Made by a program: the position numbers and the translations under genes
Sequence record: NC_019408.1
DNA length: 64,000 bases
Strand: one strand, 5' to 3'
Part shown: in pieces, positions 20,672-64,000 of the stretch
Numbering within the stretch: position 1 is the stretch's first letter
Layout of the letters: each line of letters begins with the position of its first letter
Notes under the pieces: model-generated
What the model was told of the DNA's origin: nothing
What the model saw: only the letters and a program-made list of their open reading frames with translations
The model's database searches: none

Positions 20672-20716
20672 CTTCTAGGCCCTCTCGACCTAGCCTGTCA
20701 ACACTCTCGCGCCAAC
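20672..20716 (-). promoter_or_regulatory. repeated phage promoter with upstream 16-bp element
   Basis: GTTGGCGCGAGAGTGTTGACA, N18, TAGAAG; leader is a hairpin instead of CGACGACAAC. Confidence 0.75.
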
Positions 20717-20890
20717 AAAATGTCGGCTAGTCCTCGCCGGCCGCCGGCGGATCGTCTGGTCCCTCGTCCGGTCCAGCCTCTTCCCAGGCTCTGGCCCATT
20801 CGGGGCTCCGCAGCAGCGGCAGGTTACGCCAACCTGGACCGTAGCGATCATCCATGATCTTCGTCGCGCGGCTGGTTTGAGTGCCTTCAC
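20690..20890 (-). CDS. hypothetical protein with CxCC
   Basis: GTGA overlap; runs through promoter. Confidence 0.4.
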   Translation of the reverse strand: MKALKPAARRRSWMIATVQVGVTCRCCGAPNGPEPGKRLDRTRDQTIRRRPARTSRHFVGARVLTG

Positions 20891-21120
20891 GCATCAGCCT
20901 GCACCTTCTCGGCGGGCGGGACGACGATGGTTAGATCGTCGATGTCCCATCGCCCGAACAAAGGACGCCCGGCGTCACGAATAAGCTGACAGGCGACGGT
21001 CTTGGCGATCCTCACGCGAATGGGCGCACGATCCTCTGCGTAGTTAGGGTCAAGGCAGGCATAGACGATCCTCGCGTACCGAATGTCGGGGCCAGTGACT
21101 TCGTTGCTGAAGGTCGTCAT
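20887..21120 (-). CDS. hypothetical protein, atypical codon usage
   Basis: ATG overlapping upstream stop. Confidence 0.55.
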   Translation of the reverse strand: MTTFSNEVTGPDIRYARIVYACLDPNYAEDRAPIRVRIAKTVACQLIRDAGRPLFGRWDIDDLTIVVPPAEKVQADA

Positions 21121-21434
21121 CAGCTTTGCTCGGCCTCTTCCAGGATCAGGGTGTACATGTCGCGCGGATCGCCGCACGGGATGATGTCGACGATCACGCA
21201 GGTCCGGATGCGCTCGCTCTGGGTCAGGTAGATGACGAAGTCGCCCAGGCGCGGCCCCTGGCAGTGGACCATCACGCTGATGCGCTCGATCACCAGGGGC
21301 TTGCGGAACCAGCCCCGCTTGACCAAGCGCGGCTTGGCGACGCTGAACGTGCTGGAGTGCATGGCGTGACCCCAGCCCTGTTTGCCGGGGCGGAAGTCGA
21401 AGGTCCGGGGACCGTTATTAAGGCGCAGGAGCAT
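21120..21434 (-). CDS. hypothetical protein
   Basis: ORF in operon. Confidence 0.6.
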   Translation of the reverse strand: MLLRLNNGPRTFDFRPGKQGWGHAMHSSTFSVAKPRLVKRGWFRKPLVIERISVMVHCQGPRLGDFVIYLTQSERIRTCVIVDIIPCGDPRDMYTLILEEAEQS

Positions 21435-21648
21435 GGCGACCCTTTTCGGCTAGGACGCGGCGCTCCAGGCGGCCGTGCCCGATGAAGGCGATAATGTCTT
21501 TGCCCCGGACGCGCTTGGGCATGTAGCCGCCAAAACGCCGCTGGAGCGGGATGCGCCGGTACTTGGGATCGAACAGCCCGACCCAGCGGCGCGCCCTGGG
21601 GTTCTCGCGCGGCAGGATCACCGACAGGACATAGGGTGAGAAGTTCAT
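21418..21648 (-). CDS. hypothetical protein
   Basis: ORF in operon. Confidence 0.55.
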   Translation of the reverse strand: MNFSPYVLSVILPRENPRARRWVGLFDPKYRRIPLQRRFGGYMPKRVRGKDIIAFIGHGRLERRVLAEKGRHAPAP

Positions 21649-21887
21649 GTCGTGATCGTCGAGAGGACGTAGGTCGCCTCGGCCCGGCCGTAGTCGTCGG
21701 GGCCGATCAGCATCAGTTGCGACGGCTGGTCGAGGTCGACGTCACGCCAGACCACCTTGCCCTTGCGGCCGGTGACCGACGGATCGTGCGGCAGGTCAGC
21801 GATCAGCCGCAGGGCGGCGGTGGCGATCTGGTGGGCCTCATAGGAGCCCGGTTCGATGTGGTCGGCGAGGGTGAGCTTGACGAGCAT
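21645..21887 (-). CDS. hypothetical protein
   Basis: AGGAG SD. Confidence 0.65.
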   Translation of the reverse strand: MLVKLTLADHIEPGSYEAHQIATAALRLIADLPHDPSVTGRKGKVVWRDVDLDQPSQLMLIGPDDYGRAEATYVLSTITT

Positions 21888-21899
21888 CTTGGCTCCTTT

Positions 21900-22412
21900 C
21901 TATCCGTGAAGAGAGGTCTTCAGGTGGGCGCGGCCCTGGTGGTACATCCGCATCGCGCGCTTCTCGGTCTTGCAGGGACCAAACCAGAGCAGGTCCCCCG
22001 GCCGCCGGGCGGCGATCCCATACTGCCGCATGGGCTCTTCCACGTAGTCGACGCCAGCCAAGATGCTGATCACCTCGTAGGGGCTTTCGCCCGCTTCGAT
22101 CTGCGCGTCGTCCACGCCGACGTAAAACGAGACGTCCTTGCCGAACATCCCGCCGGTGACCCTGGCATGTCGCCAGGACGTCCAGAACCACCCGCGCCGC
22201 AACTCCAGGCCGCAAACGATACCCAGGTCGGCTTCCTGCGGCTCACCGTCGGGCCAGGACCCAAGCACCGACGCCTGGAAAGCCGAGTCAGGATGGGACT
22301 CCGCCTTGACGAGGCCGGTGGCGATCCGCTTGGCGTCGTCCTCGTCGACCGCCGTGACCTCGATCTCGGTGACGAGGGCCTGGGTGACCTTGATCAGGAA
22401 GGTCTCAGCCAC
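21900..22412 (-). CDS. hypothetical protein
   Basis: GTG start after GAGG (ATG 22427 alternative). Confidence 0.6.
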   Translation of the reverse strand: MAETFLIKVTQALVTEIEVTAVDEDDAKRIATGLVKAESHPDSAFQASVLGSWPDGEPQEADLGIVCGLELRRGWFWTSWRHARVTGGMFGKDVSFYVGVDDAQIEAGESPYEVISILAGVDYVEEPMRQYGIAARRPGDLLWFGPCKTEKRAMRMYHQGRAHLKTSLHG

Positions 22413-23091
22413 GCAGGCGCGCCTCATGGAACGCGTTCGCGCCCACCGCCGCCGCCAGTTCCGACTTGATCTGGTCGACGTCGGCCTTCAATTCCTTGAA
22501 GTAGGGCGTGTCGGCGAGCAGGTCCTGCATCTTCCACAGGCCCGCATAGGCCCGCTGGACGTAGCCGGTCAGATCATCCTCGACCACGCGCACGATGTCG
22601 TGGAACTTGACCGGGACGTAGGCGTCGACGTCGCAGAGGTAAGCGACATCGTGGGCTTCGATAATCCGCACGCCGCCCGAGGCGAGGTTCTTGACGACCT
22701 GGGGGACGTGCTCGCAGTGGCTGACCGTGCGGATCGAGCCGCGCGGGGCCTTGGGCGGATTGTGCGTCACCAGGACGACCTTGTCGCCCGGCTGGAACTC
22801 CCAGCGGACCTCGGGATCGTTCAGGTGGTCGTCGATCATCTTGCGGATCGTCGCCAGCGAGCGATGGCTGTAGCAGTCGCCGTGGAGGCAGTAGTGGATG
22901 ATCTTCCACTCCTTGTCGGTGGGCGAGGGGATTTCCTTGCCCTCGCCGTCGCGGCCATGGAAGTAGGCCGCCGACTCCAGACGATGGATGGCCTCGATGT
23001 CGCGGTCGTCGTCGGTCTCGATCGTGTCGAGCAGGTTGATCACCTTCATCAGGCTGTAGGTGATCGGACGAGTGTAGGGGCGCTTGATCAC
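22405..23091 (-). CDS. hypothetical protein (FHGRDxEGK motif)
   Basis: GTGA overlap start. Confidence 0.65.
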   Translation of the reverse strand: MIKRPYTRPITYSLMKVINLLDTIETDDDRDIEAIHRLESAAYFHGRDGEGKEIPSPTDKEWKIIHYCLHGDCYSHRSLATIRKMIDDHLNDPEVRWEFQPGDKVVLVTHNPPKAPRGSIRTVSHCEHVPQVVKNLASGGVRIIEAHDVAYLCDVDAYVPVKFHDIVRVVEDDLTGYVQRAYAGLWKMQDLLADTPYFKELKADVDQIKSELAAAVGANAFHEARLRG

Positions 23092-23984
23092 AGGTGCTTC
23101 TCCAGGCCCAGGTCGTCGATCACCGCCTGGGCGATGGCTTCGAGGTTGAAGTGGCCGTCGAGGATCGCATCGCGCATGTCGTCGGCGTCGACCCAGTTGG
23201 AGGCGCCCTGGTAGGCGGTGCTCTCGGCGGCCTCGATCGCGCGCTTGAGGGCGTCGGCCAGGATCACCGCCGGGGTGCGCTTGACCTTGGCCTTCTTGAC
23301 CTTCCAGTGGAGGTCCTGGATGCGCACGACGCGGCGCGCGCCGTCGTCGATGTCCTTGAAGGCGCCGGCCTCGACCAGCCGCGCGACGGTGGCGTCGGTG
23401 AAGTGGGCGTTGGCCTCGTTCACCGGGAACGTGGTCCAGCAGTCGGTGCCCAGTTGGGTCAGGGTGCCCGACGACGTGGCGCGCGCGGCGTGGATGGCGT
23501 GGTATTCGTCGGCGAGCATGAACTGCTCGTAGCCGGGGCCGCTCAGGGTGCCAACGTCGTTGAGCACCGCGACATAGCAGTTCTCGCCGTTCCAGGACTG
23601 CGACGAGTAGCACTTCTGGAGCGTGTAGGTCTTGCCGACCGTGAAGCTCTCGCTGCCGCCCACATAGACGGCCTGGGCGTTCTGGGGGAACGGCCAGCGA
23701 TAGTGCTCATTGTCGGGATCGAAGGCTTCCAGGGCCTTGGTGATGTCCTCGCGCTTGACCTCGTCGGCCGTGAAGCGCTTGTACTTGCCCTCGGCGTCGC
23801 GGCCGTGGAACAGGTCCTGAATCGCGCGCACGATGTCGTACTCGAACGGCCAGATCGAGCCGCCCCGGTAGTCACTGACCAGCTTGTCGAACATCGCCAC
23901 CGAGCCGCCGGCCGCTTCGAGCGCCAGCAGGTCACGGATGATGTCGGCCGGCTCGCGGGCGTAGGCGTAGGGTTGACGGACCAT
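23088..23984 (-). CDS. hypothetical protein (FHGRDxEGK motif)
   Basis: ATG overlapping upstream stop. Confidence 0.7.
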   Translation of the reverse strand: MVRQPYAYAREPADIIRDLLALEAAGGSVAMFDKLVSDYRGGSIWPFEYDIVRAIQDLFHGRDAEGKYKRFTADEVKREDITKALEAFDPDNEHYRWPFPQNAQAVYVGGSESFTVGKTYTLQKCYSSQSWNGENCYVAVLNDVGTLSGPGYEQFMLADEYHAIHAARATSSGTLTQLGTDCWTTFPVNEANAHFTDATVARLVEAGAFKDIDDGARRVVRIQDLHWKVKKAKVKRTPAVILADALKRAIEAAESTAYQGASNWVDADDMRDAILDGHFNLEAIAQAVIDDLGLEKHL

Positions 23985-24354: not shown

Positions 24355-24425
24355 GTCTCCTCTGTCGTTGTCGTCGAGGGGCTTATAGGCGGAGGTCAGT
24401 GACCTGTCAACACTCTCACGCCAAC
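24355..24425 (-). promoter_or_regulatory. repeated phage promoter with upstream 16-bp element
   Basis: GTTGGCGTGAGAGTGTTGACA, N17, TATAAG, CGACGACAAC. Confidence 0.85.
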
Positions 24426-25828
24426 TTTACGCCGACCGAGGCTGCGACCTTGGTGAGGGACTCGCGCTGGGCCTTGATGCGTTTGTCGAAGGCGTCGAGC
24501 GTCGACATCATCTCGGCCTCCAGCTTGTCCAGCGCCGCCCACTGCTCGACGACCGCCTTGGCGGCCTTGTCCTGGGCCTCGTTGCGTTCTGGGCCGTAGA
24601 CCCGCTCGCGCAGTTCGGCGATCCAGGCGCGCGGCAGGCCCAGTTCCTTGGAGACCTTCTCGTCGGTCATGTCGCCGCCATAGCACTGGCGGTTGGTATC
24701 GTAGTGGGTGTCCAGGGCTTCGAGGATACGGCGGTTCTCGGCCGGCGTCGCCGCGCGCGGCGGCTCGGCGGACTGGGGCAGGGTCTTGGCGGCGGCTGGG
24801 GGCATGGCGATCTCCGGAATAGGGGTTTCGATATGGGTTTCGATGGTGGTCGGATTGTTCTTCTTGGCCAGCCGCGTCTTGGCGGCGGCCTTCTGGCGCT
24901 CGGAGCGTTCTTCCTGGGTCATGGCGGCCCAGTAGGCGCGCGGGCCGCGCCCCTTCTTTTCACGCTGCTCGGCGATCTTGGCTTCCCGCTTGGCCTTGCG
25001 CGTGGCGTGGCCCTTCTTGGCGAGTTCCGACCGTTGCTCGGGCGTCAGGGATTCGTGGTGGGCGCGCAGATGCGCCCCATCGAAGAGCTTGCGCCGATCG
25101 ACCTTGGCGTCGACGCCTTGTTCCTTGCTCACGATGGCGTAGGCCTCCTCGAAAATGGGATTGAGGAACTTGTCGGACGCGTAGTGGACGATCTCCTCGG
25201 GCAGCACGTCATCCTGGGTGCTCAGTTCCTGGATCACCCGGCGGATCGACGCCAGGAGAGGAGCCGTGGGCGCTTCAAGTCCACACTCGCGGAAGAACTT
25301 GCCGGCGTAATTCGTGAGGACGACCTTGATCCGCTGCTCGCGCGGGTAGCCGCCCGTCGTCTTGCGGATGGCGCCCCGGACGATCCTGTCGGCCGTGTCG
25401 GGATCGATCTCCGCCACGGTGGCCAGCATCTTGCCCACGGCCTCGTCTTCGAGGACGAAGTCACCCGCCTCGCGCGGGTCGATCATCTCGATCGGCTTGA
25501 TCGCGTTGGACACGACCTGGATCGCCGTGTCGATGGCGATGTCGTCGCGGTCGGCGACCGGGGCGGAGTCCTGCTTGGCGCGGCCGTGGCAGGACGGGCA
25601 GGTGTCCTTGTTGCGGTTGGCGCCGACGGCCCAGCCCCGCTTACGGAATATCTTCGAGGCCAGTTCCGCCGGGATGTGCGGGCTGCGCGTCGTCACCGGG
25701 ACGGCGTCATCGCGGTCGCACTTGCGGCAGACGGCCACGACGTGGTTCTGGCGCTTGTTGGGGTCGGTGGCCAGGGGACGCATCTCGACCCGGAACGACT
25801 CGCGCGTGGCAAGTTTGGTCGTGCTCAT
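24416..25828 (-). CDS. multidomain putative DNA-binding protein
   Basis: N-terminal CRKC...CPSC, basic T(P/Q)E(Q/E)RSE repeats, C-terminal HTH-like DEKVSKELGLPRAWIAELRE. Confidence 0.7.
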   Translation of the reverse strand: MSTTKLATRESFRVEMRPLATDPNKRQNHVVAVCRKCDRDDAVPVTTRSPHIPAELASKIFRKRGWAVGANRNKDTCPSCHGRAKQDSAPVADRDDIAIDTAIQVVSNAIKPIEMIDPREAGDFVLEDEAVGKMLATVAEIDPDTADRIVRGAIRKTTGGYPREQRIKVVLTNYAGKFFRECGLEAPTAPLLASIRRVIQELSTQDDVLPEEIVHYASDKFLNPIFEEAYAIVSKEQGVDAKVDRRKLFDGAHLRAHHESLTPEQRSELAKKGHATRKAKREAKIAEQREKKGRGPRAYWAAMTQEERSERQKAAAKTRLAKKNNPTTIETHIETPIPEIAMPPAAAKTLPQSAEPPRAATPAENRRILEALDTHYDTNRQCYGGDMTDEKVSKELGLPRAWIAELRERVYGPERNEAQDKAAKAVVEQWAALDKLEAEMMSTLDAFDKRIKAQRESLTKVAASVGVKLA

Positions 25829-26157
25829 TTCTTGCCCCTCGGACGATTGTTCTCGAACCACGCGTGCCACTCAGCCTTGGTCATCCAGGGCTGGGTGCGG
25901 TGGGCGTTGTAGAGGGCAAGGCCCTCCTCGGTGACGGTGTAGAACTTCGAGCCGCGCTCCATGTGTGGCATGCGCTGCTCGGACTTGGCGAGACCACGCT
26001 TTTCGAGCTTGGCCAGGGTCGCCGAATGGTGCGAGCCGTTCGAGCCGCCGACATCCATGGTGCGGTGTCGGCGGATCGGCTCATCGCGGAAGGATGGGAT
26101 CAGGCACCCCAGGACCTCCCAGTCGCGGTCGGTCAGTGGGGACAGGCGTCGGGTCAT
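25825..26157 (-). CDS. winged-helix protein
   Basis: ATLAKLEKRGL...FYTVTEEG pattern; GGAG SD. Confidence 0.6.
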   Translation of the reverse strand: MTRRLSPLTDRDWEVLGCLIPSFRDEPIRRHRTMDVGGSNGSHHSATLAKLEKRGLAKSEQRMPHMERGSKFYTVTEEGLALYNAHRTQPWMTKAEWHAWFENNRPRGKK

Positions 26158-26163: not shown

Positions 26164-26229
26164 CTCCAGATTGTCGTCGTCTCGACATCTAAGAGGCTTT
26201 TCCGAGCCTGTCAACACAATCACGCCAGC
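26164..26229 (-). promoter_or_regulatory. repeated phage promoter, variant 16-bp element
   Basis: GCTGGCGTGATTGTGTTGACA, N17, TAGATG, CGACGACAA. Confidence 0.75.
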
Positions 26230-27693: not shown

Positions 27694-27749
27694 CCTCCTT
27701 CGTTGTCGTCGGAGGCCTTCCTAGACTGGCGCGAGTGTGTTGTCAACAG
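27694..27749 (-). promoter_or_regulatory. repeated phage promoter with inverted element in spacer
   Basis: TTGACA-ACACACTCGCGCCAGTC-TAGGAA, CGACGACAAC-GAAGGAGG. Confidence 0.8.
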
Positions 27750-29371: not shown

Positions 29372-29415
29372 CTTCTAGCGAAGCTTCACCAGGACGTCAA
29401 CACTCTAACGCCAGA
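29372..29415 (-). promoter_or_regulatory. repeated phage promoter variant upstream of ACP
   Basis: TCTGGCGTTAGAGTGTTGACG, N17, TAGAAG. Confidence 0.7.
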
Positions 29416-30070
29416 CCCAACTCAAGCTGAGCACGATGTCGTGGTCCTCGTAGGCGGCGCTGCGTCCGGTGATCAGCTTGATCCCCCGCAGCGGCCCCAG
29501 CCGCCAAAGCTGGACCTCCTTACGCTCATGGCGCCCCGGCACATGCTCCAGCAGTTCGCGGCGCTTGATCGCGATATGCTTTTGCTCGCGGTGGACGACC
29601 AGGGCGATCTTGCACGTCGGGCTCTTGCCAAACCACCGGCGCCAGTAGCCGGGCGTGTCGAGGTTGTCGAACAAGCGCGCCACGCGCTTGCTGACCGGGC
29701 GCAGCCCCGCGACCTGCCGGCGCACGTTGAGCGGCGGGAAGGTGCAGGGCGGCCAGACGTCGAGCAGGCTCTGGCGCAGGCGGCGAAACTCCCAGGCCAA
29801 CATGGCATTGTCCTTGGAGTTGTTGCACGCCACGCACGCCGCCGCGACATTGCTGTCGTGGTTCGAGCCGCCCTCGGCCTTGGCCTCCAGGTGTTCGATC
29901 GTGACCTCGTCCGGCTCCAGGTTGCCGGCTTTCTTACCGACGCGCCGGCGATATTTCATCTGCCCCGTGCAGTAGGTGCAGAGGCCGCCCGACTCCAGGA
30001 AGAGCCGTTGCCGGCGGTTTGGGGCCGCTGGCGGGAGGGGATCGTAGACGATGACGTCAGAGGACGACAT
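29405..30070 (-). CDS. HNH endonuclease
   Basis: CTYC...TIEHL..KAEGGSN..SN.AAAC.ACNNSK. Confidence 0.8.
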   Translation of the reverse strand: MSSSDVIVYDPLPPAAPNRRQRLFLESGGLCTYCTGQMKYRRRVGKKAGNLEPDEVTIEHLEAKAEGGSNHDSNVAAACVACNNSKDNAMLAWEFRRLRQSLLDVWPPCTFPPLNVRRQVAGLRPVSKRVARLFDNLDTPGYWRRWFGKSPTCKIALVVHREQKHIAIKRRELLEHVPGRHERKEVQLWRLGPLRGIKLITGRSAAYEDHDIVLSLSWVWR

Positions 30071-34397: not shown

Positions 34398-34455
34398 GCC
34401 TCCTTGGTTGTCGTCGACGCTCCCTATAGACCCGGTCTGTCAGCCTGTCAACACT
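34398..34455 (-). promoter_or_regulatory. repeated phage promoter
   Basis: GAGTGTTGACA, N17, TATAGG, CGACGACAAC-CAAGGAGG. Confidence 0.8.
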
Positions 34456-34765
34456 CGACAGCCAAGTAACGATTCCGCTGGGGCTCGTAGGGTAGATCGT
34501 TGGCGACCGCCATCAGCCAGCCGGCGTGACAGCGCTTGGGCGCGCAGTGGCAGACGAGGTGGAAGCCCTTGAGATTAGCCTTCACCCAGGCGATGAACTG
34601 CGCATCGTCCCGCCTGTGGGCGATGTACCGGTCGATCACCTGATCGCGAGTTCCGTCGACGCCGATCCGGAACTCGTTGCCCGCCGGCGTCCCCCGGCCG
34701 ACGTACTTGGACATCGGCGGGAGGTGGCCTGGGAAATCGCTTCGGCTCAGGACTTGGAGGATCAC
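34448..34765 (-). CDS. DUF4326 family protein
   Basis: YVGRGT..GN.F.IG.DGTR.QVI.RY...L.G..LVCHCAP..CHA. Confidence 0.8.
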   Translation of the reverse strand: MILQVLSRSDFPGHLPPMSKYVGRGTPAGNEFRIGVDGTRDQVIDRYIAHRRDDAQFIAWVKANLKGFHLVCHCAPKRCHAGWLMAVANDLPYEPQRNRYLAVEC

Positions 34766-36816: not shown

Positions 36817-37063
36817 AGGTGATCCTGTAGGGCAGGCCGCCGACGCAAATCTTGCCCCGGAGCCCGCTGGCGGTGGTGAAGGAAAAGCCCTGGCGACCTT
36901 TGGTCCCGGCGCAGCCGAACCAGCGGCGATGGAAGCTGACGATCTGCGAGCCGGTGTCACGCTCGACAAGCCGCCGGGCGTGGTTGCCTTCCCAGCCGAG
37001 CGCCATCATCCCGATCGTCAGGAAGAAAACGCCCAGCGCGAACGTAGCCCAGACGGACCTCAC
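36806..37063 (-). CDS. membrane-anchored hypothetical protein
   Basis: N-terminal hydrophobic helix; two Cys. Confidence 0.55.
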   Translation of the reverse strand: MRSVWATFALGVFFLTIGMMALGWEGNHARRLVERDTGSQIVSFHRRWFGCAGTKGRQGFSFTTASGLRGKICVGGLPYRITYDR

Positions 37064-37440
37064 GCGGCGACGAACCCGGCGATCACGTCGGCGACGACGC
37101 GGCGCTTCTCGACCGGCATGCTGGCCAGGGCCAGGATCGTGCCGGCGCCGATCTGGGCGACGGCGCTTTCCAGGTCGGCGCGACCGTCGGTCATGAAGGT
37201 CGGATCATCGACCGGCGGGTAGAAGCTCTCGATCGGCTGCTTGAGGAAGCGCGCGGCGTCGTAGAGCTTCGAGGACGAGATGCGGTTGTCGCCGCGCTCG
37301 TACTTCTGGACCTGCTGGAACGTGATGCCCAGGGCGTTGGCCAGATCGCCTTGCGAATAGCCGGCGGCCTTGCGGGTGTTGCGCAGCTTCTGACCGACGT
37401 ACTTGTCGACCGGGTGCGGGGTCTTGTCTTCGTCAGCCAT
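37060..37440 (-). CDS. XRE-family HTH regulator, alphaproteobacterial type
   Basis: HPVD.YVG..LR..R...G.SQ..LA..LGITFQQVQKYERG.NRIS.SKL. Confidence 0.9.
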   Translation of the reverse strand: MADEDKTPHPVDKYVGQKLRNTRKAAGYSQGDLANALGITFQQVQKYERGDNRISSSKLYDAARFLKQPIESFYPPVDDPTFMTDGRADLESAVAQIGAGTILALASMPVEKRRVVADVIAGFVAA

Positions 37441-38719: not shown

Positions 38720-38788
38720 ACTCCTCTATGTCGTCGTCTCGACCCTTCTAGGTGGAGGTTACCGTTCTGTCAACACACAACCGCCAAC
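38720..38788 (-). promoter_or_regulatory. repeated phage promoter, variant 16-bp element
   Basis: GTTGGCGGTTGTGTGTTGACA, N17, TAGAAG, CGACGACA. Confidence 0.8.
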
Positions 38789-42196: not shown

Positions 42197-42225
42197 ACCC
42201 TAGAGGAGCGCCGATGTGTTGACAA
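42197..42225 (-). promoter_or_regulatory. leftward promoter of divergent pair
   Basis: TTGTCA 42225-42220, N17, TAGGGT 42202-42197. Confidence 0.6.
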
Positions 42226-42242
42226 GCGCCAAATGGCTCTGG

Positions 42243-42306
42243 CTGGCGAGTGTTGACAAGGCGGCGGTGGTCCCTTAGAAGGGCGGCGACGACAACGAAA
42301 GGAGGC
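42243..42306 (+). promoter_or_regulatory. rightward repeated phage promoter
   Basis: CTGGCGAGTGTTGACA, N17, TAGAAG, CGACGACAAC-GAAAGGAGG. Confidence 0.85.
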
Positions 42307-44015: not shown

Positions 44016-44204
44016 GTGACCAACGAGGAGATCACCTTCGCGGGCCTGATCAAGGCCATGGAGGACGCCCGCCGCGAAGCCCGCGCGGTGGGCGATCTCC
44101 TCAAGTCCGCCGAGATCGACGGCTGGTTCAAGGAGCACGCCCGGATCATCCGGGTGATCCGCGACAAGGCCGAGGCCGAAGAATTCGACAATCCGTTGGC
44201 GTGA
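44016..44204 (+). CDS. hypothetical protein
   Basis: GTG after AGGA; stop lies inside 16-bp element. Confidence 0.6.
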   Translation: MTNEEITFAGLIKAMEDARREARAVGDLLKSAEIDGWFKEHARIIRVIRDKAEAEEFDNPLA

Positions 44205-44261
44205 GAGTGTTGACAGCCTCGCCGCGCCCGGCTACAAGCCTCCTCGACGACAACGCAAGGA
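44195..44261 (+). promoter_or_regulatory. repeated phage promoter with upstream 16-bp element
   Basis: GTTGGCGTGAGAGTGTTGACA, N17, TACAAG, CGACGACAAC-GCAAGGAG. Confidence 0.85.
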
Positions 44262-46794: not shown

Positions 46795-47285
46795 CCCGCA
46801 GCACCTCCGACATCCTCGCCCGCATCAAGTCCCTGGAGAACGACACGTCCGACTTCTTCGGCTTCCAGACGGGCGACCTCGTCTGCTACCTGCCGTTCGC
46901 CGACGCCAAGCCCTGGCTGAACGAGAACGCCACGGCCGAGGCCTGGGCGCCCAGCGTCAACACGCCCGAGGCGATCAAGTCGACCATCCACGACTACATG
47001 GCGTTCGCCTGGGACAAGGCCAACAACTGCCGGGGCCTGTCGGCCGGCCGCTCGCTCGACCACATGAAGGCGTGGCTCTGGCTTTACGGCGCCGACGAGG
47101 CCTGGGTCGAGGCCCTGCGCCTGGACAACTACACCATGTACGGTAAGCCCCAGCTTCGCGCGATCTGCGAGCACTTCGGCTGGGACTGGACGGCCTGGGA
47201 CGACGGCTGCTGGACCAACAACGAGGGTGCGAGCGGCTCCAGCCCGGACGAGGTCGAGCGCGTCGGCGTGCTGGCTGACGCCTAG
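46791..47285 (+). CDS. conserved phage hypothetical protein
   Basis: DYM.FAW.KA.NCRGLSA.RS..HM.AWLW pattern. Confidence 0.75.
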   Translation: MTRSTSDILARIKSLENDTSDFFGFQTGDLVCYLPFADAKPWLNENATAEAWAPSVNTPEAIKSTIHDYMAFAWDKANNCRGLSAGRSLDHMKAWLWLYGADEAWVEALRLDNYTMYGKPQLRAICEHFGWDWTAWDDGCWTNNEGASGSSPDEVERVGVLADA

Positions 47286-47351
47286 TTGGCGTTAGAGTGT
47301 TGACAGCCGTCAGGGCCTCCTCTATACCCACCCTCGACGACAACGAGGAGG
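47285..47351 (+). promoter_or_regulatory. repeated phage promoter with upstream 16-bp element
   Basis: GTTGGCGTTAGAGTGTTGACA, N17, TATACC, CGACGACAAC-GAGGAGG. Confidence 0.85.
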
Positions 47352-50841: not shown

Positions 50842-51065
50842 TCGACTACGTCTACCGCAAAGACCCGCGCGGCAGCGACTACGGCGCCCAGCGGATGGAC
50901 CTGAGCGAAGCCCTGGCGGTGGTCGCCGCCGAGAAGCAGGACTTCCTCATTCGCTTGGTCGAGGTCCTGCACGAGAACAACCTCCTGCGCGACGCCGACG
51001 TGCTGGAGTTGCTCGGCAAGGGCTGGGGCCTGGAGGCCTACGACGTCCTGCACGTAGACGATTGA
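50838..51065 (+). CDS. hypothetical protein
   Basis: ATGA overlap. Confidence 0.6.
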   Translation: MIDYVYRKDPRGSDYGAQRMDLSEALAVVAAEKQDFLIRLVEVLHENNLLRDADVLELLGKGWGLEAYDVLHVDD

Positions 51066-51114
51066 CAACACTCTCGCGCCAGCATAGAAGCCTTCTCGAC
51101 GACAACGAAGGAGG
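51062..51114 (+). promoter_or_regulatory. repeated phage promoter with inverted element in spacer
   Basis: TTGACA-ACACTCTCGCGCCAGCA-TAGAAG, CGACGACAAC-GAAGGAGG. Confidence 0.85.
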
Positions 51115-52531: not shown

Positions 52532-52854
52532 TGCCGATCGAGGTCCCCTGGAGCCCCCAGGACGCCGAACTGTGGTTCGGCTATGCCATGACCACCAGCG
52601 CGGGCCTATGGTTCCTGATCGGGCTGTTCTTCGCCGTCAAAGACTATGACAAGTGGAGGAGCGGCATTGAGGGGCCGGTCAGCCGCGCGATCTACGCCAT
52701 CGTGGTGGTGATCGCCGGCACGGGTTTCGGGATGCTGTTCTTTCTCCCCCTTCTCGCCATGGCCCTGACCGCCCTCGCCCTGGGCGGCCCGATCCTCCTC
52801 CTGGTCTGGAGCCTTCGTTCTCTTGGCCGTCTTGTGTTGACAAAGGCAGGTTAG
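52531..52854 (+). CDS. membrane protein
   Basis: Three hydrophobic helices. Confidence 0.6.
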   Translation: MPIEVPWSPQDAELWFGYAMTTSAGLWFLIGLFFAVKDYDKWRSGIEGPVSRAIYAIVVVIAGTGFGMLFFLPLLAMALTALALGGPILLLVWSLRSLGRLVLTKAG

Positions 52855-59464: not shown

Positions 59465-59516
59465 TTGACAACACTCTCACGCCAACATAGAACCTCCTCG
59501 ACGACAACGAGGAGGG
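59465..59516 (+). promoter_or_regulatory. repeated phage promoter with inverted element in spacer
   Basis: TTGACA-ACACTCTCACGCCAACA-TAGAAC, CGACGACAAC-GAGGAGG. Confidence 0.85.
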
Positions 59517-59520
59517 CCGC

Positions 59521-59940
59521 ATGGCTTACGCAATTCCCGACCTGAGCACCTTCACCTTCACCGACCCGTCGGTGGAAAGCTTCGCCAGGGCCATGATCTC
59601 GATGATCGAGGCCAACCAAGCGATCATCGACGAGTTCGCCAAGAGCCTGATCGAGAACCCCGTGCGCGCTCTGGAGCGCAGCCTGTCGGTCAAGCTGGCC
59701 GCCGTCCGTCAGAACGCGGCGAAGGAAGCCCTCGAACAGACCCTGGACACGCTCCTGCACGGGACCGACAAGACCTGGGCGGTGATCAAGCTGGAACTCC
59801 AGCAAGCGCTCCTGCATCACGTGGTCTACCACGCGTCGCGGTCGTCGCGCTCGACCAACGCCGAGGCCAACGACATGGAGCGCTTCGACCTGCAAGCCAA
59901 GGCCGAGTTGCTCGACCGCGTCATGAAGGGCCGCTTCTAA
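59521..59940 (+). CDS. hypothetical protein
   Basis: GGAGG SD. Confidence 0.75.
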   Translation: MAYAIPDLSTFTFTDPSVESFARAMISMIEANQAIIDEFAKSLIENPVRALERSLSVKLAAVRQNAAKEALEQTLDTLLHGTDKTWAVIKLELQQALLHHVVYHASRSSRSTNAEANDMERFDLQAKAELLDRVMKGRF

Positions 59941-60182
59941 TGCGCGGCGTCGAGGTCAACGAGAGCTATCAGACCGAGCAGCGCTCGTTCGATGGCCAAC
60001 TCGCCGGCAAGTACGGCGCTGCCTCGGGCGGCCCGGACCTGACCCGTGAACAGTGGCAGGCGATGCAGCGGGCCGACCGCAAGCGCTTCGCCGGCTTCAT
60101 CATGGGCGCCTTCGTGTTCATCTTCTGCCTGACCTGGGTGATCAACGATCTGACCCACTTCGGCGCGGCGCTGCCGTTCTAA
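59940..60182 (+). CDS. small membrane protein
   Basis: C-terminal hydrophobic helix. Confidence 0.6.
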   Translation: MRGVEVNESYQTEQRSFDGQLAGKYGAASGGPDLTREQWQAMQRADRKRFAGFIMGAFVFIFCLTWVINDLTHFGAALPF

Positions 60183-60559
60183 TGAAGACGCTCGACGAAC
60201 GCATCGCCGAGGCTATCGCCACTCCTCGTCCGGCCTGGATCGAGAAGAAGGGCGATCGCTTCCACGTCATCACCAAGGGCGTGCTGTTCCCCAACACGCG
60301 CAACGCCCTGCACAAGACCTGGAGCCGCCGCGCCGGCGCCCTGGCCTGCATCCAGCAGGACGGCTACACGTTGCTGGAGGGCGATTGCCCGTTGCCCGAG
60401 GTGACCCAGGCCCAGCGCGACGCCTACCAGTTCCAGGGCGCCGAGCGGCGCGAGGCCGTCGAGATGCTGAGCCGCGAACTGGGCATCCACCAGGACGAAA
60501 TCCGCCGCGCGCTGCGCAACCTCGAAGGCAAGGGCCTGATCCAGTTCGGCGGGCGCTGA
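60182..60559 (+). CDS. hypothetical protein with C-terminal HTH-like segment
   Basis: TAATG overlap; LSRELGI.QDEIRRALRNLEGKGLI. Confidence 0.65.
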   Translation: MKTLDERIAEAIATPRPAWIEKKGDRFHVITKGVLFPNTRNALHKTWSRRAGALACIQQDGYTLLEGDCPLPEVTQAQRDAYQFQGAERREAVEMLSRELGIHQDEIRRALRNLEGKGLIQFGGR

Positions 60560-60565: not shown

Positions 60566-60632
60566 CTTGGCGTTTGTGTGTTGACAGCGCCAGTCCGGTT
60601 CTGTAGACCTCTGCTCGACGACAACGAGGAGG
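60566..60632 (+). promoter_or_regulatory. repeated phage promoter, variant 16-bp element
   Basis: CTTGGCGTTTGTGTGTTGACA, N17, TAGACC, CGACGACAAC-GAGGAGG. Confidence 0.8.
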
Positions 60633-60637
60633 CCCCC

Positions 60638-60844: not shown

Positions 60845-60847
60845 GCC

Positions 60848-61243
60848 ATGATCACCCACAACATCGATCCGCGCATCGGCGTCCTCAACTCGGGCGTCTA
60901 CTATGCCTACGTCAACGGCTATCACCAGCCCGAGACGCGCGGCACGCTCGAAGAGGTTGAGATCGCCCTGGGCGTTCGCAAGCCCAAGCCCGCGCCGGCT
61001 CCCCTGGTGGAAGTCCAGGGCCGGGGCGGGCGCGTCTCGGTGCAGTTCGGCACCATCAACGGCAAGCCCCTGACCCTGACGATCCAAGAGGCCGACAGCG
61101 TCTGCGCCGACGTCGAGTGCGGGCGCCACGGCTGCTCGCTGGCGCTGCTGGACGACTTCGGCACCATCGGCGAGGACGGCCCCAAGGTGCCCCAGAAGAC
61201 CATCGACAAGATGATCGACTGGGCGCTGACGAAGGGCTGGTGA
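60848..61243 (+). CDS. hypothetical protein
   Basis: GAGG SD. Confidence 0.65.
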   Translation: MITHNIDPRIGVLNSGVYYAYVNGYHQPETRGTLEEVEIALGVRKPKPAPAPLVEVQGRGGRVSVQFGTINGKPLTLTIQEADSVCADVECGRHGCSLALLDDFGTIGEDGPKVPQKTIDKMIDWALTKGW

Positions 61244-61452
61244 TGAGCAGCACGCGCATCGCCGCCGAGGTCCTGGAGGCCATGAAGAGCACCAACGACC
61301 CGGCCCTCCAGGAGCGCCGCGTCGGCGCGGTCCTGGCCGAATATGCTGGCGATCCCGACACCTTCGATCTCGAAGGCCTGAGCCCGACGTCTCGGAGGAT
61401 CGTCCACGAAACCACGCTGCACTGGCGGGCGCACCTGCGCCTCCGTGCATGA
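61243..61452 (+). CDS. hypothetical protein
   Basis: TGATG overlap. Confidence 0.55.
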   Translation: MSSTRIAAEVLEAMKSTNDPALQERRVGAVLAEYAGDPDTFDLEGLSPTSRRIVHETTLHWRAHLRLRA

Positions 61453-61478
61453 AATTTTAATCTGGAGAGGGCCTTAAG

Positions 61479-63512
61479 TTGCTGAATTTCCAACCGTTTA
61501 AGACGGCCGTCGCGGCGCAGTTCGCCAAGATGTCCAAGGGCCAACTCTACCGCGTCGAGGTCGACAAGGACCTCCTGTGGCAGACCTACCTCGCCGCCTT
61601 CCCGCCGGGCACGGACCCGATGTTCCGCGCGCGCACCGAGCACAACTGCTCGTGCTGCCGCGCCTTCGTGCGCCAGGGCGGCGACGTCGTGGCCATCGTC
61701 GACAACAAGATCGTCACCCTGTGGGACATCACCGTTCCGGGCGAGCCGGCCTACCAGCAGGTCGCCGACAGCCTCGCGGGCCTGATCCGTTCGCGGCCGA
61801 TCGCCGACGTCTTCCTGCACGACCAGAAGTCGATCGGCACCGACCGCAGCATCGAGTCGATGCTGGGCGGCGACGTGACCTGGAACCACTTCTACTGCGA
61901 CGTGCCCCAGCAGTTCGTCAAGAAGCGCACCGACATCCCCACGGCGCTGCACGGCCCGCGCATGGCGGCCGAGACGCTGCTGCGCGCGGTGACCGACATC
62001 AGCCGTGAGGCGGTCGAGACCGTGCTCGAACTGGTCGCCCAGAAGTCGGTCTACCGGATCGAGGAGCACAAGGCGACCGTCGAGGCCTTCCGGGCGATGC
62101 AGAACAGCTTCGCCGGCAAGACGGGCCTGGACGCGACGCTGCACGCCTGGAGCACGGCCACCAAGGGCGAAGTCTGGGGCTCGGTGATCGGCATCAAGAA
62201 CACCGTGATCGGCTCGCTTCTGCTCGACCTGTCGGGCGACATGGAGATCGAGGACGCGGTCAAGAAGTACGAGACCAAGGTCGCGCCGCAGAACTACAAG
62301 CGCACCTCGACGATCGCCACCAAGCGCCAGATCGAGGCCGCCAAGAAGACGCTGGAGGACCTGGGCCTGACCTCGGCCCTGGAGCGCCGCTACGCCGTCC
62401 TGACGGACGTGTCGATCAACGACGTCCTGTTCGCCGATCGCTCGGCCAAGGCGGCGCTGAGCGCGGACGTGTTCTCGGAGATGGCGGCCGAGGTGGGCGA
62501 GAAGACCAAGTCGTTCGACAAGGTCGAGGAGGTCCCGATCGACCGCTTCCTGAGCGACATCCTGCCCAAGGTCACGTCGATCGAGGCCCTGGTCGAGAAC
62601 CGTCTGGCGGGCAACTTCGTCAGCCTGATCGCGCCCAAGAACCCGACGGCCGGCAACCTCTTCAAGTGGGGCAACAACTTCTCCTGGTCCTATGCCGGCG
62701 AGGTCGCGGACTCCATCAAGCAGCGCGTCAAGGCCGCTGGCGGTAACGTCTCGGGCGACCTCTGCTGCCGCCTGGGCTGGTTCAACCACGACGACCTCGA
62801 CTTCCACATGTTCGAGCCGGGCGGTGGTCACATCTTCTTCCGCGAGAAGGTCTCGCCCTTCACGCGCGGCCAACTCGACGTCGACATGAACGCCGGGCGC
62901 GGCACCACTCGCTCGCCGGTCGAGAACATCTTCTACGGCGATCGCAAGCGCATGAAGGAAGGCGTCTACGAACTGAAGGTCCACCAGTTCGACAACCGTG
63001 ACGCCTCGCGCGATCCGGGCTTCGAGGTCGAGATCGACTACCTGGGCGCGGTGACCAAATTTGCCTACGCCAAGGCCCTGCGCTACCAGGAATACGTCAC
63101 GGTCGCCAAGTTCGAGTACAGCCACGCCGGCGGGATCAAAATCCTGTCGTCGCTGCCCTCGTCCTCGGCGAGCAAGGACGTCTGGGGCGTGAAGACCGAG
63201 ACCTTCCGCAAGGTCAACGTCGTCATGCTGTCGCCCAACTTCTGGGACGGCGAGCCGGGCGTCGGCAACAAGCACTTCTTCTTCATGCTGGAGGGCGGCA
63301 TCAACGAGGACGGCGCGCGCGGCTTCTACAACGAGTTCCTCAAGGACTCGCTGAGCCCGCACCGCCGCGTCTTCGAGATGCTGGGCTCCAAGCTGAAGCC
63401 CGCGCCGGCCGCCGAGCAACTCTCGGGCCTGGGCTTCTCGTCGTCCAAGCCCGACACCCTGACCGTCAAGGTCTCGGGCGCCTTCACCCGCGTTCTGAAA
63501 ATCAAGTTCTAG
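61479..63512 (+). CDS. large phage protein with HNCSCC motif and C-terminal YfaP/TerD-like domain
   Basis: TEHNCSCCRAF; LGWFNHDDLDFH..EP.G..I.F; LDVDMNAG; PVENIF; GVY.L.VHQF. Confidence 0.75.
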   Translation: MLNFQPFKTAVAAQFAKMSKGQLYRVEVDKDLLWQTYLAAFPPGTDPMFRARTEHNCSCCRAFVRQGGDVVAIVDNKIVTLWDITVPGEPAYQQVADSLAGLIRSRPIADVFLHDQKSIGTDRSIESMLGGDVTWNHFYCDVPQQFVKKRTDIPTALHGPRMAAETLLRAVTDISREAVETVLELVAQKSVYRIEEHKATVEAFRAMQNSFAGKTGLDATLHAWSTATKGEVWGSVIGIKNTVIGSLLLDLSGDMEIEDAVKKYETKVAPQNYKRTSTIATKRQIEAAKKTLEDLGLTSALERRYAVLTDVSINDVLFADRSAKAALSADVFSEMAAEVGEKTKSFDKVEEVPIDRFLSDILPKVTSIEALVENRLAGNFVSLIAPKNPTAGNLFKWGNNFSWSYAGEVADSIKQRVKAAGGNVSGDLCCRLGWFNHDDLDFHMFEPGGGHIFFREKVSPFTRGQLDVDMNAGRGTTRSPVENIFYGDRKRMKEGVYELKVHQFDNRDASRDPGFEVEIDYLGAVTKFAYAKALRYQEYVTVAKFEYSHAGGIKILSSLPSSSASKDVWGVKTETFRKVNVVMLSPNFWDGEPGVGNKHFFFMLEGGINEDGARGFYNEFLKDSLSPHRRVFEMLGSKLKPAPAAEQLSGLGFSSSKPDTLTVKVSGAFTRVLKIKF

Positions 63513-63524
63513 GAAAGGAAGACC

Positions 63525-63941
63525 ATGGAAAACATCTTCGAAGTCGCCTCGCGCGAAAAGTACCGCTACGAGTCCGCCAAGGGCCTCATCTCGACCGAGG
63601 ACCTGTGGGACCTGCCGCTGACCAGCGACACGGGCAAGGCCAACCTGAACGACATCGCCGTTGGCCTGTTCAAGCAGGTCAAGGACCTGGACGACATCTC
63701 GTTCGTGACGCCCAAGACGCTCGACAAGACCGTCGCGCCGCGCCTGGAGATCGTCAAGGCGGTGATCGCCTACCGCCAGGACCAGAACCGCAAGAAGCTG
63801 GAAGCCTCGACCAAGCGCGAGACCGCCCGCATCCTGCAAGAAGCCATCGCCGCCAAGCGCTCCGAGAAGATCGCCGGCACCCCGCTGGAAGAACTCGAAG
63901 CGCAACTGGCCGCGCTGAAGGCCGAGGGCGTCGAGGCCTAA
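63525..63941 (+). CDS. conserved phage hypothetical protein
   Basis: IFE.ASR.K.RY.S.KG.IS.EDLWDLPL pattern; AGGA SD. Confidence 0.75.
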   Translation: MENIFEVASREKYRYESAKGLISTEDLWDLPLTSDTGKANLNDIAVGLFKQVKDLDDISFVTPKTLDKTVAPRLEIVKAVIAYRQDQNRKKLEASTKRETARILQEAIAAKRSEKIAGTPLEELEAQLAALKAEGVEA

Positions 63942-63948
63942 TCGGCTG

Positions 63949-64000
63949 TTGACAACACTCTCGCGCCAACATAGAAGGGCCTCCGACGACAACGCCGGAG
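63949..64000 (+). promoter_or_regulatory. repeated phage promoter with inverted element in spacer
   Basis: TTGACA-ACACTCTCGCGCCAACA-TAGAAG, CGACGACAAC-GCCGGAG. Confidence 0.85.

Follow-up and report, generated by a model that had tools for sequence, protein, structure and literature searches.

The window, that is the whole stretch of 64,000 nt analysed here, corresponds to bases 124001–188000 of the Caulobacter phage CcrRogue. It carries promoters of a common layout, TTGACA-N16–18-TAGAAG/C, followed by a leader CGACGACAACG and a Shine-Dalgarno sequence. A 16-bp element, GTTGGCGYKAGAGTGT, adjoins the -35 box in two arrangements: in the upstream form it precedes the hexamer, in the spacer form it is inverted and fills the spacer (TTGACA-ACACTCTCRCGCCARCA-TAGAAR). 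When up to three mismatches were allowed, GTTGGCGYKAGAGTGT was found 13 times in the window versus 1.88 expected (100 dinucleotide shuffles: mean 1.88, sd 1.3, maximum 5). A -35 hexamer (TGACA or TGTCAA) adjoins 12 of the 13 copies; the copy at 29786 has no adjoining -35 box and is at chance level. The individual sites are the following.

12234–12269, minus strand: family promoter outside the range of the preliminary description, with family core and leader; only ..CTGGCTGACAAGTG is present upstream of the -35 box.
19165–19201, minus strand: family promoter outside the same range; only AGTG is kept beside the -35 box.
20701–20716, minus strand: upstream-form element, perfect copy; it shares its last T with the start of the -35 box TTGACA (20701–20696), the spacer has 18 nt, the -10 hexamer is TAGAAG (20677–20672) and the usual leader CGACGACAACG is absent.
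24366–24425, minus strand: complete upstream-form cassette of element (24425–24410), TTGACA, 17-nt spacer, TATAAG and leader CGACGACAACG (24376–24366); the TGA stop of the gene upstream (CDS end 24416) falls within the element.
26214–26229, minus strand: degenerate copy of the upstream form, GCTGGCGTGATTGTGT (3 mismatches), at the promoter of a winged-helix gene (25825–26157).
27718–27746, minus strand: variant of the spacer-form promoter with TTGACA (27746–27741), spacer ACACACTCGCGCCAGTC and the -10 hexamer TAGGAA, which begins with the TAG stop of the gene upstream.
29400–29415, minus strand: upstream-form element (2 mismatches) adjoining TTGACG; an HNH endonuclease gene terminates within it (CDS end 29405).
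34451–34466, minus strand: degenerate upstream-form element CTTGGCTGTCGAGTGT (4 mismatches) at a family promoter with leader; the degenerate copy is also found in BL10 and phiCbK.
38773–38788, minus strand: degenerate copy of the upstream form (3 mismatches) at the promoter that serves the operon with the XRE/TgrL orthologue (37060–37440).
42219–42258, both strands: divergence point with two oppositely directed promoters; the rightward one has a degenerate upstream-form element CTCTGGCTGGCGAGTG (42238, 4 mismatches) and TTGACA at 42253, the leftward one the -35 box TTGTCA (42227–42222) with TTGGCGC directly adjoining and a spacer that starts with ACAC, as in the spacer form.
44195–44255, plus strand: complete upstream-form cassette with perfect element (44195–44210), -35 box at 44210, -10 hexamer TACAAG and leader at 44245; the upstream CDS ends within the element (44204).
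47285–47345, plus strand: complete upstream-form cassette with perfect element (47285–47300), -35 box at 47300, -10 hexamer TATACC and leader at 47335; the upstream CDS ends at 47285.
51062–51107, plus strand: spacer-form cassette, TTGACA-ACACTCTCGCGCCAGCA-TAGAAG (51062–51090) and leader; the TGA stop of the gene upstream lies within the -35 hexamer.
52822–52842, plus strand: degenerate upstream-form element CTTGGCCGTCTTGTG with TTGACA, at a family promoter.
59465–59509, plus strand: spacer-form cassette (promoter 59465–59493, spacer ACACTCTCACGCCAACA), the flipping promoter; it drives the operon containing a TrmB-like regulator (60182–60559).
60566–60626, plus strand: degenerate upstream-form cassette, CTTGGCGTTTGTGTGT (3 mismatches), with -35 box at 60581 and leader.
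63949–63994, plus strand: spacer-form cassette, TTGACA-ACACTCTCGCGCCAACA-TAGAAG (63949–63977) and leader; its gene begins just past the end of the window.

These results bear out the preliminary description in its repeated 16-bp element adjoining TTGACA, in the upstream-form sites at 20701, 24410, 29400, 44195 and 47285 and their variants at 26214, 38773, 42238 and 60566, as well as in the spacer form at 51062, 59465 and 63949 with the variant at 27746. It had also regarded both arrangements as one sequence; indeed, once reverse-complemented, the spacer consensus agrees with the upstream consensus at 16 of 16 positions, and the common notation for both forms is GTTGGCGYKAGAGTG-TTGWCA. Genes upstream were said to end in or beside the element, which is the case for the CDS ends 24416, 29405, 44204 and 47285; these stop codons make use of the two positions at which the element varies (GCG-TGA-GAG, GCGT-TAG-AG). 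A motif scan of the whole genome, as suggested there, yielded about 24 family promoters between 115 and 203 kb, and all above-chance copies (≤3 mismatches) are located on promoters of this region. Since all sites face away from the divergence point at about 42.2 kb, each one is a promoter for the local direction of transcription.

The element is located upstream, in graded quality, in 19 of the approximately 24 family promoters, and its exact reverse complement forms the 17-nt spacer in five. Apart from two promoters with TTGACG, the -35 box is a perfect TTGACA in all 24, the hexamers are spaced by 16–18 nt and the -10 hexamers are equally good in both forms. The core promoters therefore do not look activator-dependent. 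Among the 19 upstream-form promoters, TTGGC and AGTG+TTGACA stand out as peaks of information content, and the spacers have about 0 bits; the five spacer-form promoters combine an almost invariant spacer with little information upstream. GTG adjoins TTGACA in nearly all upstream-form promoters, including those without TTGGC, and the leader is equally present where the element is very degenerate.

Conservation was compared between the distant lineages Rogue, phiCbK and BL57. The element of upstream-form promoters is 83% identical, compared with 60% for their spacer and 48% for the flank; at spacer-form promoters identity is 93% in the spacer and 30–33% at the upstream position. Three of the five promoters of the spacer form have a non-coding spacer, so that the conservation of this part is not accounted for by coding constraint. 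This pattern looks like selection on discrete blocks, as for a protein-binding site, and judged by these sequences the element acts like a functional cis-site coupled to the -35 box and not like a by-product of promoter duplication. For the promoter at 51062, Rogue, BL10, phiCbK, Swift and BL57 all show the spacer form. The orthologous promoter of gene 59521 (window coordinate) has the spacer form in Rogue and BL10 and the upstream form in phiCbK, Swift and BL57, and a decayed upstream copy, GGCCGCTAGAAAGTGT, is still present at the Rogue promoter. Given this one promoter, the two forms may be interchangeable; from the single flip found (n = 1) we infer its direction and its neutrality. Among these phages the element is clade-specific: it is absent from the sister genera Colossus and RB23, which share the host and the promoter core. 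Their promoters carry other accessory blocks: RB23 has an A-tract, and in Colossus the -10 hexamer is preceded by TTTCTT.

Unrelated GC-rich mobile elements carry the same 20-mer, sometimes in tandem, ahead of promoters; a search of the species collection gave no exact copy of the 20-mer in any Caulobacter genome. In the mobile elements the site precedes the core promoter, its centre falling roughly between -57 and -127; it always points toward the promoter and is often tandem. Such a layout resembles an activator site more than a repressor operator. In the 19-mer TTGGCnnGAGAnnGTTGAC of these elements, TTGAC is not the -35 box of the promoter; hence TTGAC belongs to the site itself. Small AlpA-like genes follow the site in L012, L025 and L117. 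No Pfam match was obtained for the small mobile-element proteins.

Our preferred reading, to which we assign a probability of roughly 0.4, is a bipartite asymmetric operator on the -35 box that is read by one protein and most likely serves early-promoter repression. The element would represent the distal two-thirds of an approximately 20-bp operator TTGGC-N9-TTGWC(A), whose proximal half-site would be the -35 box of an early promoter of the host sigma-70 type (Caulobacter sigma-73). Because TTGACA is nearly its own reverse complement (TTGWCAA), exactly two layouts over the -35 box are available: the distal arm may lie upstream (site centre about -40) or downstream in the spacer (centre about -25), and both are used. 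A putative single sequence-specific DNA-binding protein, phage- or host-encoded, would read the whole site and share the -35 box with sigma region 4 or compete for it. The most likely outcome would be repression in both geometries: the large class of early genes would be shut off once the first 15 minutes have passed, and silencing might extend to an episomal carrier state; graded operator quality might lead to graded timing. Both the binding of a protein at the element and its negative effect are what we infer from the site. In phiCbK, 41% of the genes, tgrL included, peak by 15 min and then fall (PMC10688885), and the tgrL orthologue of Rogue lies behind an upstream-form promoter. Phages of the Dolichocephalovirinae are able to persist as episomes, but their pseudolysogens were reported to lack superinfection immunity (PMC12195562), which speaks against a classical maintenance repressor. 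A centre near -40, as in the upstream form, is also where class II activators classically bind, which again speaks against repression.

Three phage proteins had been named in the preliminary description as candidate binding partners. In the case of the XRE protein at 37060, orthologous to TgrL, the element scores no higher than random windows with the published ChIP-seq matrices of TgrL and CdxA. The winged-helix protein (25825–26157) has no counterpart in the 100–200 kb of phiCbK searched, though phiCbK has the element, and for the GcrA-like protein there is no GANTC methylation site in the element.

An asymmetric, probably monomeric or head-to-tail factor might instead activate the upstream form and repress the spacer form, defining two temporal classes; we consider this possible, if somewhat doubtful. 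It is close to the single phage protein with geometry-dependent sign of the preliminary description; the site is asymmetric and about 20 bp long, and its occurrence in two geometries is compatible with one protein that acts by geometry. The upstream-form centre lies at the class II activator position and the spacer site at a classical repressing position, and the mobile-element arrangement is activator-like. A precedent by analogy may be the marboxes of MarA, SoxS and Rob in E. coli: activated class II promoters have them over the -35 box in one orientation, and MarA-repressed promoters, e.g. rob, have them backward between -35 and -10. Like the element, they are asymmetric (20 bp), with two recognition blocks and orientation and position classes relative to -35; however, there is no sequence similarity, and the CcrRogue core promoters are consensus-like. 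Nor was an AraC-type two-HTH domain found among the ten phage HTH proteins scanned (for one of them among the best 25 of 30 Pfam matches). The opposite signs fit poorly, since the same orthologous operon has the upstream form in three lineages and the spacer form in two, and its regulation would be inverted. Furthermore, upstream-form cores are as close to consensus as spacer-form ones, thus activation is not obviously needed, and with the tgrL operon already at its peak by 15 min an activator would need to be host-encoded, injected or produced very early.

That no dedicated trans-factor exists, the element resulting from cassette duplication or gene conversion or being an extended -35 or UP-like element intrinsic to RNA polymerase, appears unlikely to us. 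The repetition of the entire cassette (element, -35, -10, leader and Shine-Dalgarno sequence) about 24 times, the GTG kept even without TTGGC and the different accessory blocks of RB23 and Colossus are in its favour. Yet duplication or conversion should also homogenise the upstream-form spacers, which carry about 0 bits, and orthologues retain the element while spacers and flanks diverge. Polymerase subunits touch fixed positions, with which one sequence placed upstream and inverted in the spacer does not fit, and the element is G+C-rich, unlike UP elements. Still less probable is a recombination handle, as had also been proposed for this element, with the shared 22-mer or cassette as homology for exchanging promoter-gene modules; reportedly, such exchange via PeSL promoter-stem-loop cassettes has been proposed for T4-type phages. 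Cassettes flank blocks of small genes with no assigned function, and 5 of 30 breakpoints versus BL10 and 10 of 66 versus phiCbK lie within 80 nt of a family promoter (random positions, 1.3 and 2.9). However, as about 25 of approximately 190 gene boundaries (13%) have a family promoter, about 4 of 30 and 9 of 66 are predicted for breakpoints at gene boundaries, so that the mapping gives little more than this rate. About 85% of the synteny breakpoints are not at promoters, and recombination does not explain the strict -35 locking and the reciprocal conservation. We rate lowest a loading site for a processive antiterminator of the lambda Q or AlpA type riding polymerase through long early operons, where the -10-like GACAAC in the leader CGACGACAACG would be a putative sigma-dependent pause. 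Q-binding elements are situated either in the spacer between -35 and -10 or immediately ahead of the -35 box, which may be a comparable placement; the initial transcribed sequence is common to the family promoters, except for 20701, and the AlpA-like genes behind the mobile-element site point in the same direction. On the other hand, profile search detected no Q-like or AlpA-like protein in Rogue, the small mobile-element proteins lack Pfam matches, and the leader does not depend on the quality of the element.

Returning to the operator, similar arrangements are found in other phages. The C1 repressor operators of phage P1 are 17 bp long, asymmetric and dispersed over the genome of an episomal prophage. 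Like these, the CcrRogue sites are asymmetric, overlap promoters of many operons across a large phage genome and occur in a phage group capable of episomal persistence; unlike them, each lies over the -35 hexamer in one of two mirror geometries, the two kinds of site have no sequence relationship, and the pseudolysogens of the group are reported to lack immunity. The gp71 stoperators of mycobacteriophage L5, 13-bp asymmetric sites of about 30 copies per genome, are likewise highly repeated with a TGTCAA/TTGACA-like end, and one gp71 operator overlaps the -35 box of an early promoter. Most of them, however, lie within transcription units, off promoters and in one orientation, whereas 100% of the CcrRogue sites are promoter-locked, in two orientations. 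The cassette core, TTGACA, 16–18 nt and a -10 hexamer TAGAAG or TAGAAC matching TANAWC, resembles the housekeeping sigma-73 consensus of Caulobacter, TTGACGS-N10-14-GCTANAWC; in contrast to the CcrRogue family, we know of no host promoters with a TTGGCGYKAGAGTG arm. With the PeSL of T4-type phages the family shares a repeated early-promoter cassette, a hairpin-prone leader downstream, small genes and a plastic genome region, but breakpoints are not enriched beyond the gene-boundary rate and the distinctive feature is the flipping accessory element instead of the stem-loop.

The window is 100% identical to bases 124001–188000 of the phage CcrRogue genome (NC_019408.1; Rogue in the following), and the assembled record reproduces it. 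Annotated genes are located on the minus strand up to approximately window position 42.2 kb and on the plus strand past that point. A search for the 16-bp element GTTGGCGYKAGAGTGT with up to three mismatches yielded 13 matches in the window, versus 1.88 expected, and this number was reached in none of 100 shuffles. In 12 of the 13 copies, each read in its own orientation, TGACA or TGTCAA follows directly at the 3' side. As a matrix motif the site reads TTGGCnnGAGAnnGTTGAC. It occurs in two forms. The upstream form is element-TTGACA-N16–18-TAGAAG-like, in which the first T of the -35 hexamer is also the last T of the element. In the spacer form, TTGACA-ACACTCTCRCGCCARCA-TAGAAR, the element appears exactly reverse-complemented and makes up the 17-nt spacer. 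All positions at which a preliminary description of this sequence had placed the two forms were recovered when the window was scanned again.

The whole Rogue record was then assembled and scanned. It contains approximately 24 promoters of this family, all within 115–203 kb; each points in the direction of the neighboring genes and has a Shine-Dalgarno sequence and a start codon on its 3' side. The predicted cassette consists of TTGACA, 16–18 nt, TAGAAG/TAGAAC or a near variant, 5–8 nt, the leader CGACGACAACG, the Shine-Dalgarno sequence and the start codon; transcription would be expected to begin close to the C of this leader. A sigma-70-type layout, with TTGACA/TTGACG as -35 and a TANAWC-type -10 hexamer 16–18 nt apart, is present at these approximately 24 Rogue sites and likewise in the related phages BL10, phiCbK, BL57 and Swift; its core fits the consensus of the Caulobacter housekeeping (sigma-73) promoter type. 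The upstream form (n = 19) is graded, from perfect copies to copies that retain only AGTG; the spacer form (n = 5) is found at window positions 27746, 51062, 59465 and 63949 and at genome position 192573. In phiCbK, upstream-form promoters are located at 114298, 146054, 162686, 165820 and 178464, among others, and spacer-form promoters at 169599, 183481 and 185967. Genome-wide there are 18 recognisable copies of the element, every one at a promoter, and no copies away from a -35 hexamer were found above chance level in the whole Rogue record.

As the preliminary description had observed, genes located upstream end within the element (CDS ends at 24416, 29405, 44204 and 47285), and their stop codons, TGA or TAG, occupy its two variable positions. 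At spacer-form promoters such stops are a TGA inside the -35 TTGACA (51065) and a TAG opening the -10 TAGGAA (27721); a further one lies within promoter parts at position 4598 of the Rogue sequence piece L003. With genes stopping inside the element, the -35 or the -10, coding and regulatory sequences are packed extremely tightly. At the divergence point (window 42219–42258) the leftward promoter, which drives an operon with a GcrA-like gene, has TTGTCA as its -35 hexamer, directly adjoined by the shortened arm TTGGCGC, and its spacer starts with ACAC as in the spacer form.

Such similarity might reflect function or common ancestry, and three results point to function: the block-wise distribution of information, the reciprocal conservation and the restriction to one clade. 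In the upstream form, information content peaks over TTGGC and over AGTG plus TTGACA and is about zero over the spacer; in the spacer form the spacer is nearly invariant, with little information upstream. Duplication alone would not wipe out the spacers only, therefore this pattern speaks for function. Conservation was compared between Rogue, phiCbK and BL57 at their orthologous promoters; the first two share approximately 78% identity in this region, and for many encoded proteins identity is 45–75%. At upstream-form orthologs the element is 83% identical, and identity falls to 60% in the spacer and 48% in the flank, whereas at spacer-form orthologs the spacer is 93% identical, versus 30–33% upstream. 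This spacer is non-coding in three of the five spacer-form promoters. Finally, Colossus and RB23 (Bertelyvirus), phages of the same host, have the TTGACA-N17-TAnAAG core and lack the element. RB23 has an A-tract 5' of the -35 hexamer (4602, 5503 and 19945 of its sequence piece L031), and Colossus has GTTTCTT directly before the -10 hexamer (938, 17258, 20367 and 32322 of L108) and a different leader, GACGATCAA.

At one orthologous promoter, that of the gene at window 59521–59940, the form itself has changed: Rogue and BL10 carry the spacer form there, phiCbK (178464), Swift and BL57 carry the upstream form, and the RB23 promoter is plain. Since the Rogue promoter retains a decayed upstream copy, GGCCGCTAGAAAGTGT, the sequences suggest that the upstream form was the ancestral state and that site turnover, not a physical inversion, led to the present arrangement. 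The other spacer-form promoters have this form in every lineage sampled.

We extended the search also beyond the phiCbK-like phages. The exact 20-mer, which includes the TTGAC end, had no match in the Caulobacter genomes of the species collection; it matched two Brevundimonas contigs, one unclassified proteobacterial metagenome-assembled genome and one foreign viral contig. Further sites came from a relaxed pattern and from scanning metagenomes. By count alone the genome matches are at chance level (approximately 9 expected in 596 Gb, estimated for uniform base composition). Despite this, their contexts are not random. Contig L012 has three tandem copies spaced by 34–36 bp, L025 has two, the second of which overlaps a -35 hexamer in precisely the upstream-form manner, and L117 has two plus one facing a divergent gene. 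One common copy, differing only at the two variable positions of the element, is found in L023, L026, L112, L119 and L120, the flanks of which diverge, and in L073, L079, L094 and L098 the site lies 12–13 nt 5' of the -35 hexamer. In all of these the TTGAC end faces the promoter. Thus, TTGAC belongs to the site itself, which is read in elements of more than one kind. The carriers include elements with AlpA-like and Rep-like genes and elements in which the site adjoins a umuC-like gene; the site is single or tandem, 5' of the first promoter. In the latter, GC-rich viral contigs (L073:351, L079, L094:3452 and L098:12), the 20-mer and promoter directly follow a gene with a UmuC-like C-terminal end, as judged by eye, and after the promoter come an untranslated leader of approximately 300–500 nt and a gene for an HNH plus AAA protein. 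Rfam searches of three of the site-bearing elements gave no match, and in L073 and L094 they found nothing in this leader. BLASTP, phmmer and a small profile revealed no transcription factor common to Rogue and the site-bearing fragments.

The site may be pictured as TTGGC-N9-TTGWC, with the -35 box serving as the proximal half; the two arrangements would then be two ways to place an asymmetric site on a near-palindromic -35 hexamer, and a binding protein would share or contest this box with sigma region 4. We consider uniform repression at both forms the leading, still tentative reading, with a probability of roughly 0.4. Counted in its favor are core promoters that are near consensus and of equal quality in both forms, the spacer position, which is classically repressive, and the orthologous flip, which suggests that the two forms are interchangeable. 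Furthermore, the early gene class of phiCbK falls after 15 min (PMC10688885). A dual activator-repressor, activating at the upstream form, is somewhat less probable: the site centre near -40 and the activator-like layout in the other elements, upstream, tandem and promoter-facing, argue for it, but interchangeable forms, as suggested by the flip, argue against it. The remaining rivals divide the probability left by these two. An antisense promoter in the spacer form, made up of the element and TTGTCA, was rejected, as no -10 lies at the right distance and the flank is only 30–33% conserved.

A wider reading, which we regard as unlikely, is that the 20-mer is a regulatory code that the jumbo phiCbK-like phages have in common with several small, unrelated mobile elements found in Caulobacteraceae and other GC-rich bacteria. 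Phages and small elements may all use one host DNA-binding protein, or the small elements may be satellites that sense the early regulator of the phage via a copied operator; in both cases the phages would have fused the site onto the -35 box, where it is workable in either orientation. 

Dispersed asymmetric operators and orientation-dependent sites are already known from P1 C1, the L5 stoperators and the marboxes; new are a site fused to the -35 box in either of two mirror-image arrangements and its evolutionary flip. Like the dispersed operators of the P1 C1 type, the Rogue site is asymmetric and present in multiple copies, each overlapping a promoter. L5 stoperators lie within transcription units in a single orientation relative to transcription and act as roadblocks; the Rogue copies are found away from a -35 hexamer only at chance level, and they come in two orientations. 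The geometry of orientation and position is analogous to that of MarA/SoxS marboxes, the regulators of which are AraC/XylS-family proteins with two HTH motifs, but a Pfam scan of ten phage HTH proteins gave no AraC-type domain (for gp025, among the best 25 of 30 matches). MerR-type operators are palindromes in spacers of 19–20 bp, whereas here the spacer has 17 nt and the element is non-palindromic. In the sigma-54 consensus, TGGCAC-N5-TTGCW, the GG and GC doublets are exactly 10 nt apart; TTGGCGCGAGAGTGTTGAC has 2 nt more between the bases that correspond to them. Compared by eye, neither sigma-54 sites nor the alphaproteobacterial LexA box (GTTC-N7-GTTC), the CtrA box or GANTC fits the element, which, lacking GANTC, also differs from GcrA/CcrM-dependent promoters.

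The binding candidates initially put forward were an XRE protein, GcrA and winged-helix proteins. Published ChIP-seq position weight matrices (CAAC[CT]-type) for TgrL and CdxA, of the XRE group RtrA/RtrB/CdxA/CdxB/TgrL, scored no better at the promoters than in random windows; they do not score at the element, and only 2 and 1, respectively, of their top 60 genome matches lie near a family promoter. TgrL and its host paralogs are thus excluded as far as published data go. For GcrA, a GANTC site is missing from the element. The winged-helix gene at 25825–26157 has no counterpart in the phiCbK stretch searched (100–200 kb), yet phiCbK carries the element. The TrmB-like regulator at 60182–60559, in the operon of the flipping promoter, is absent from Swift, which has both forms, and present in Colossus, which has no element. 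Compared with phiCbK (L028:28940–29852), Swift (L109:20420–20952) lacks exactly this one gene, with its neighbors intact. This is weak evidence against the TrmB-like protein, because the deletion may be recent.

The phyletic range of gp128 (Rogue 198642–199190), a winged-helix protein, coincides exactly with that of the element, with four protein clusters only in a database of 5.8 billion sequences, all from phiCbK-like phages; its structure model is confident only in the C-terminal winged helix. As many genes have the same phyletic profile, gp128 is only a lead. Distant full-length homologs of gp109 (phrog_10876; L003:18289–19404 in Rogue) occur in small bacterial elements (L025:4810–6108 and L034:5300–6000), one of them 3' of the operator-bearing promoter in a Brevundimonas element. 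Three further homolog contexts lack the site, and short, iteron-like direct-repeat arrays, CGTTTCGACG and GGCGGTGGT, directly 5' of the homolog in L034 make the family look like replication initiators; gp109 was therefore rejected as reader. It may be the replication initiator of the phage, which, if true, bears on episomal persistence. The 152-residue protein gp025 (L004:13077–13532 in Rogue) has three separate HTH matches, at approximately residues 6–29, 61–106 and 117–151, including weak ones to sigma-70 region 4. A long asymmetric site could be read by such a tandem-HTH monomer. RB23, which is without the element, has a gp025 homolog.

The element had also been proposed as a recombination handle. 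Of the synteny breakpoints, 5 of 30 against BL10 and 10 of 66 against phiCbK are no more than 80 nt away from a family promoter, versus 1.3 and 2.9 for random positions. However, approximately 13% of gene boundaries carry a family promoter, which predicts similar counts, so this idea gains no support beyond the cassettes being intergenic. With PeSL-like mobile promoter cassettes, module junctions would coincide with the cassettes; the breakpoints near Rogue family promoters are above random but not above the gene-boundary share.

PhiCbK-like phages are standard tools in Caulobacter cell-cycle research. In the genome paper of 2012 promoters come up a single time and no motif is described; later papers offer time-course classes only, and neither cis-elements of phiCbK-like transcription nor mapped transcription start sites of this phage group were found in the literature searched. 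The present analysis supplies a concrete map of approximately 24 predicted early promoters, and the candidate operator could explain the switch-off of the early class or silencing in the episomal carrier state. Because the 20-mer also occurs in mobile elements unrelated to these phages, its regulator appears to reach beyond this phage group. The geometry is unusual, with an asymmetric site, a near-palindromic -35 box, both orientations in use and one evolutionary flip. The flip is a clean natural experiment on whether operator orientation matters when the operator overlaps the -35 box.

Between -10 and leader there is usually a CCTCC-like stretch that complements the Shine-Dalgarno GGAGG (window 12234, 27711, 63984 and others), and in read-through RNA the two could pair as a hairpin. 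In three leaders the hairpin has 8 bp of GC and approximately -15 to -18 kcal/mol, in two of them with a T-run after it, and one such leader carries a terminator annotation in the phiCbK record (L028:33509–33536). Native leaders folded at -6.5 versus -5.9 kcal/mol for chimeras (p ~0.08); covariation in the hairpin is not established. The leader of the spacer-form promoter at Rogue 192573 (L003:4600–4640) has no Shine-Dalgarno sequence; in its place, 5' of the gene, stands the inverted repeat GTCCGAAAT..ATTTCGGAC, which is conserved and also present in phiCbK and BL10.

A second class of Rogue promoters, GTGAATC-TTGACA, has a GANTC (CcrM-type) methylation site adjoining the -35 hexamer:

Genome 31064 (L004:31064), GTGAATC-TTGACA promoter
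Genome 72734 (L005:22734), GTGAATC-TTGACA promoter
Genome 118018 (L006:18018), GTGAATC-TTGACA promoter
Genome ~207930 (L003:~19930), GTGAATC-TTGACA promoter

Rogue has genes for a GcrA-like protein and for two DNA methyltransferases, so this class may represent late promoters that depend on methylation and GcrA. They are located 5' of the head scaffold gene, a gene of the tail gene cluster and other large plus-strand (structural) genes.
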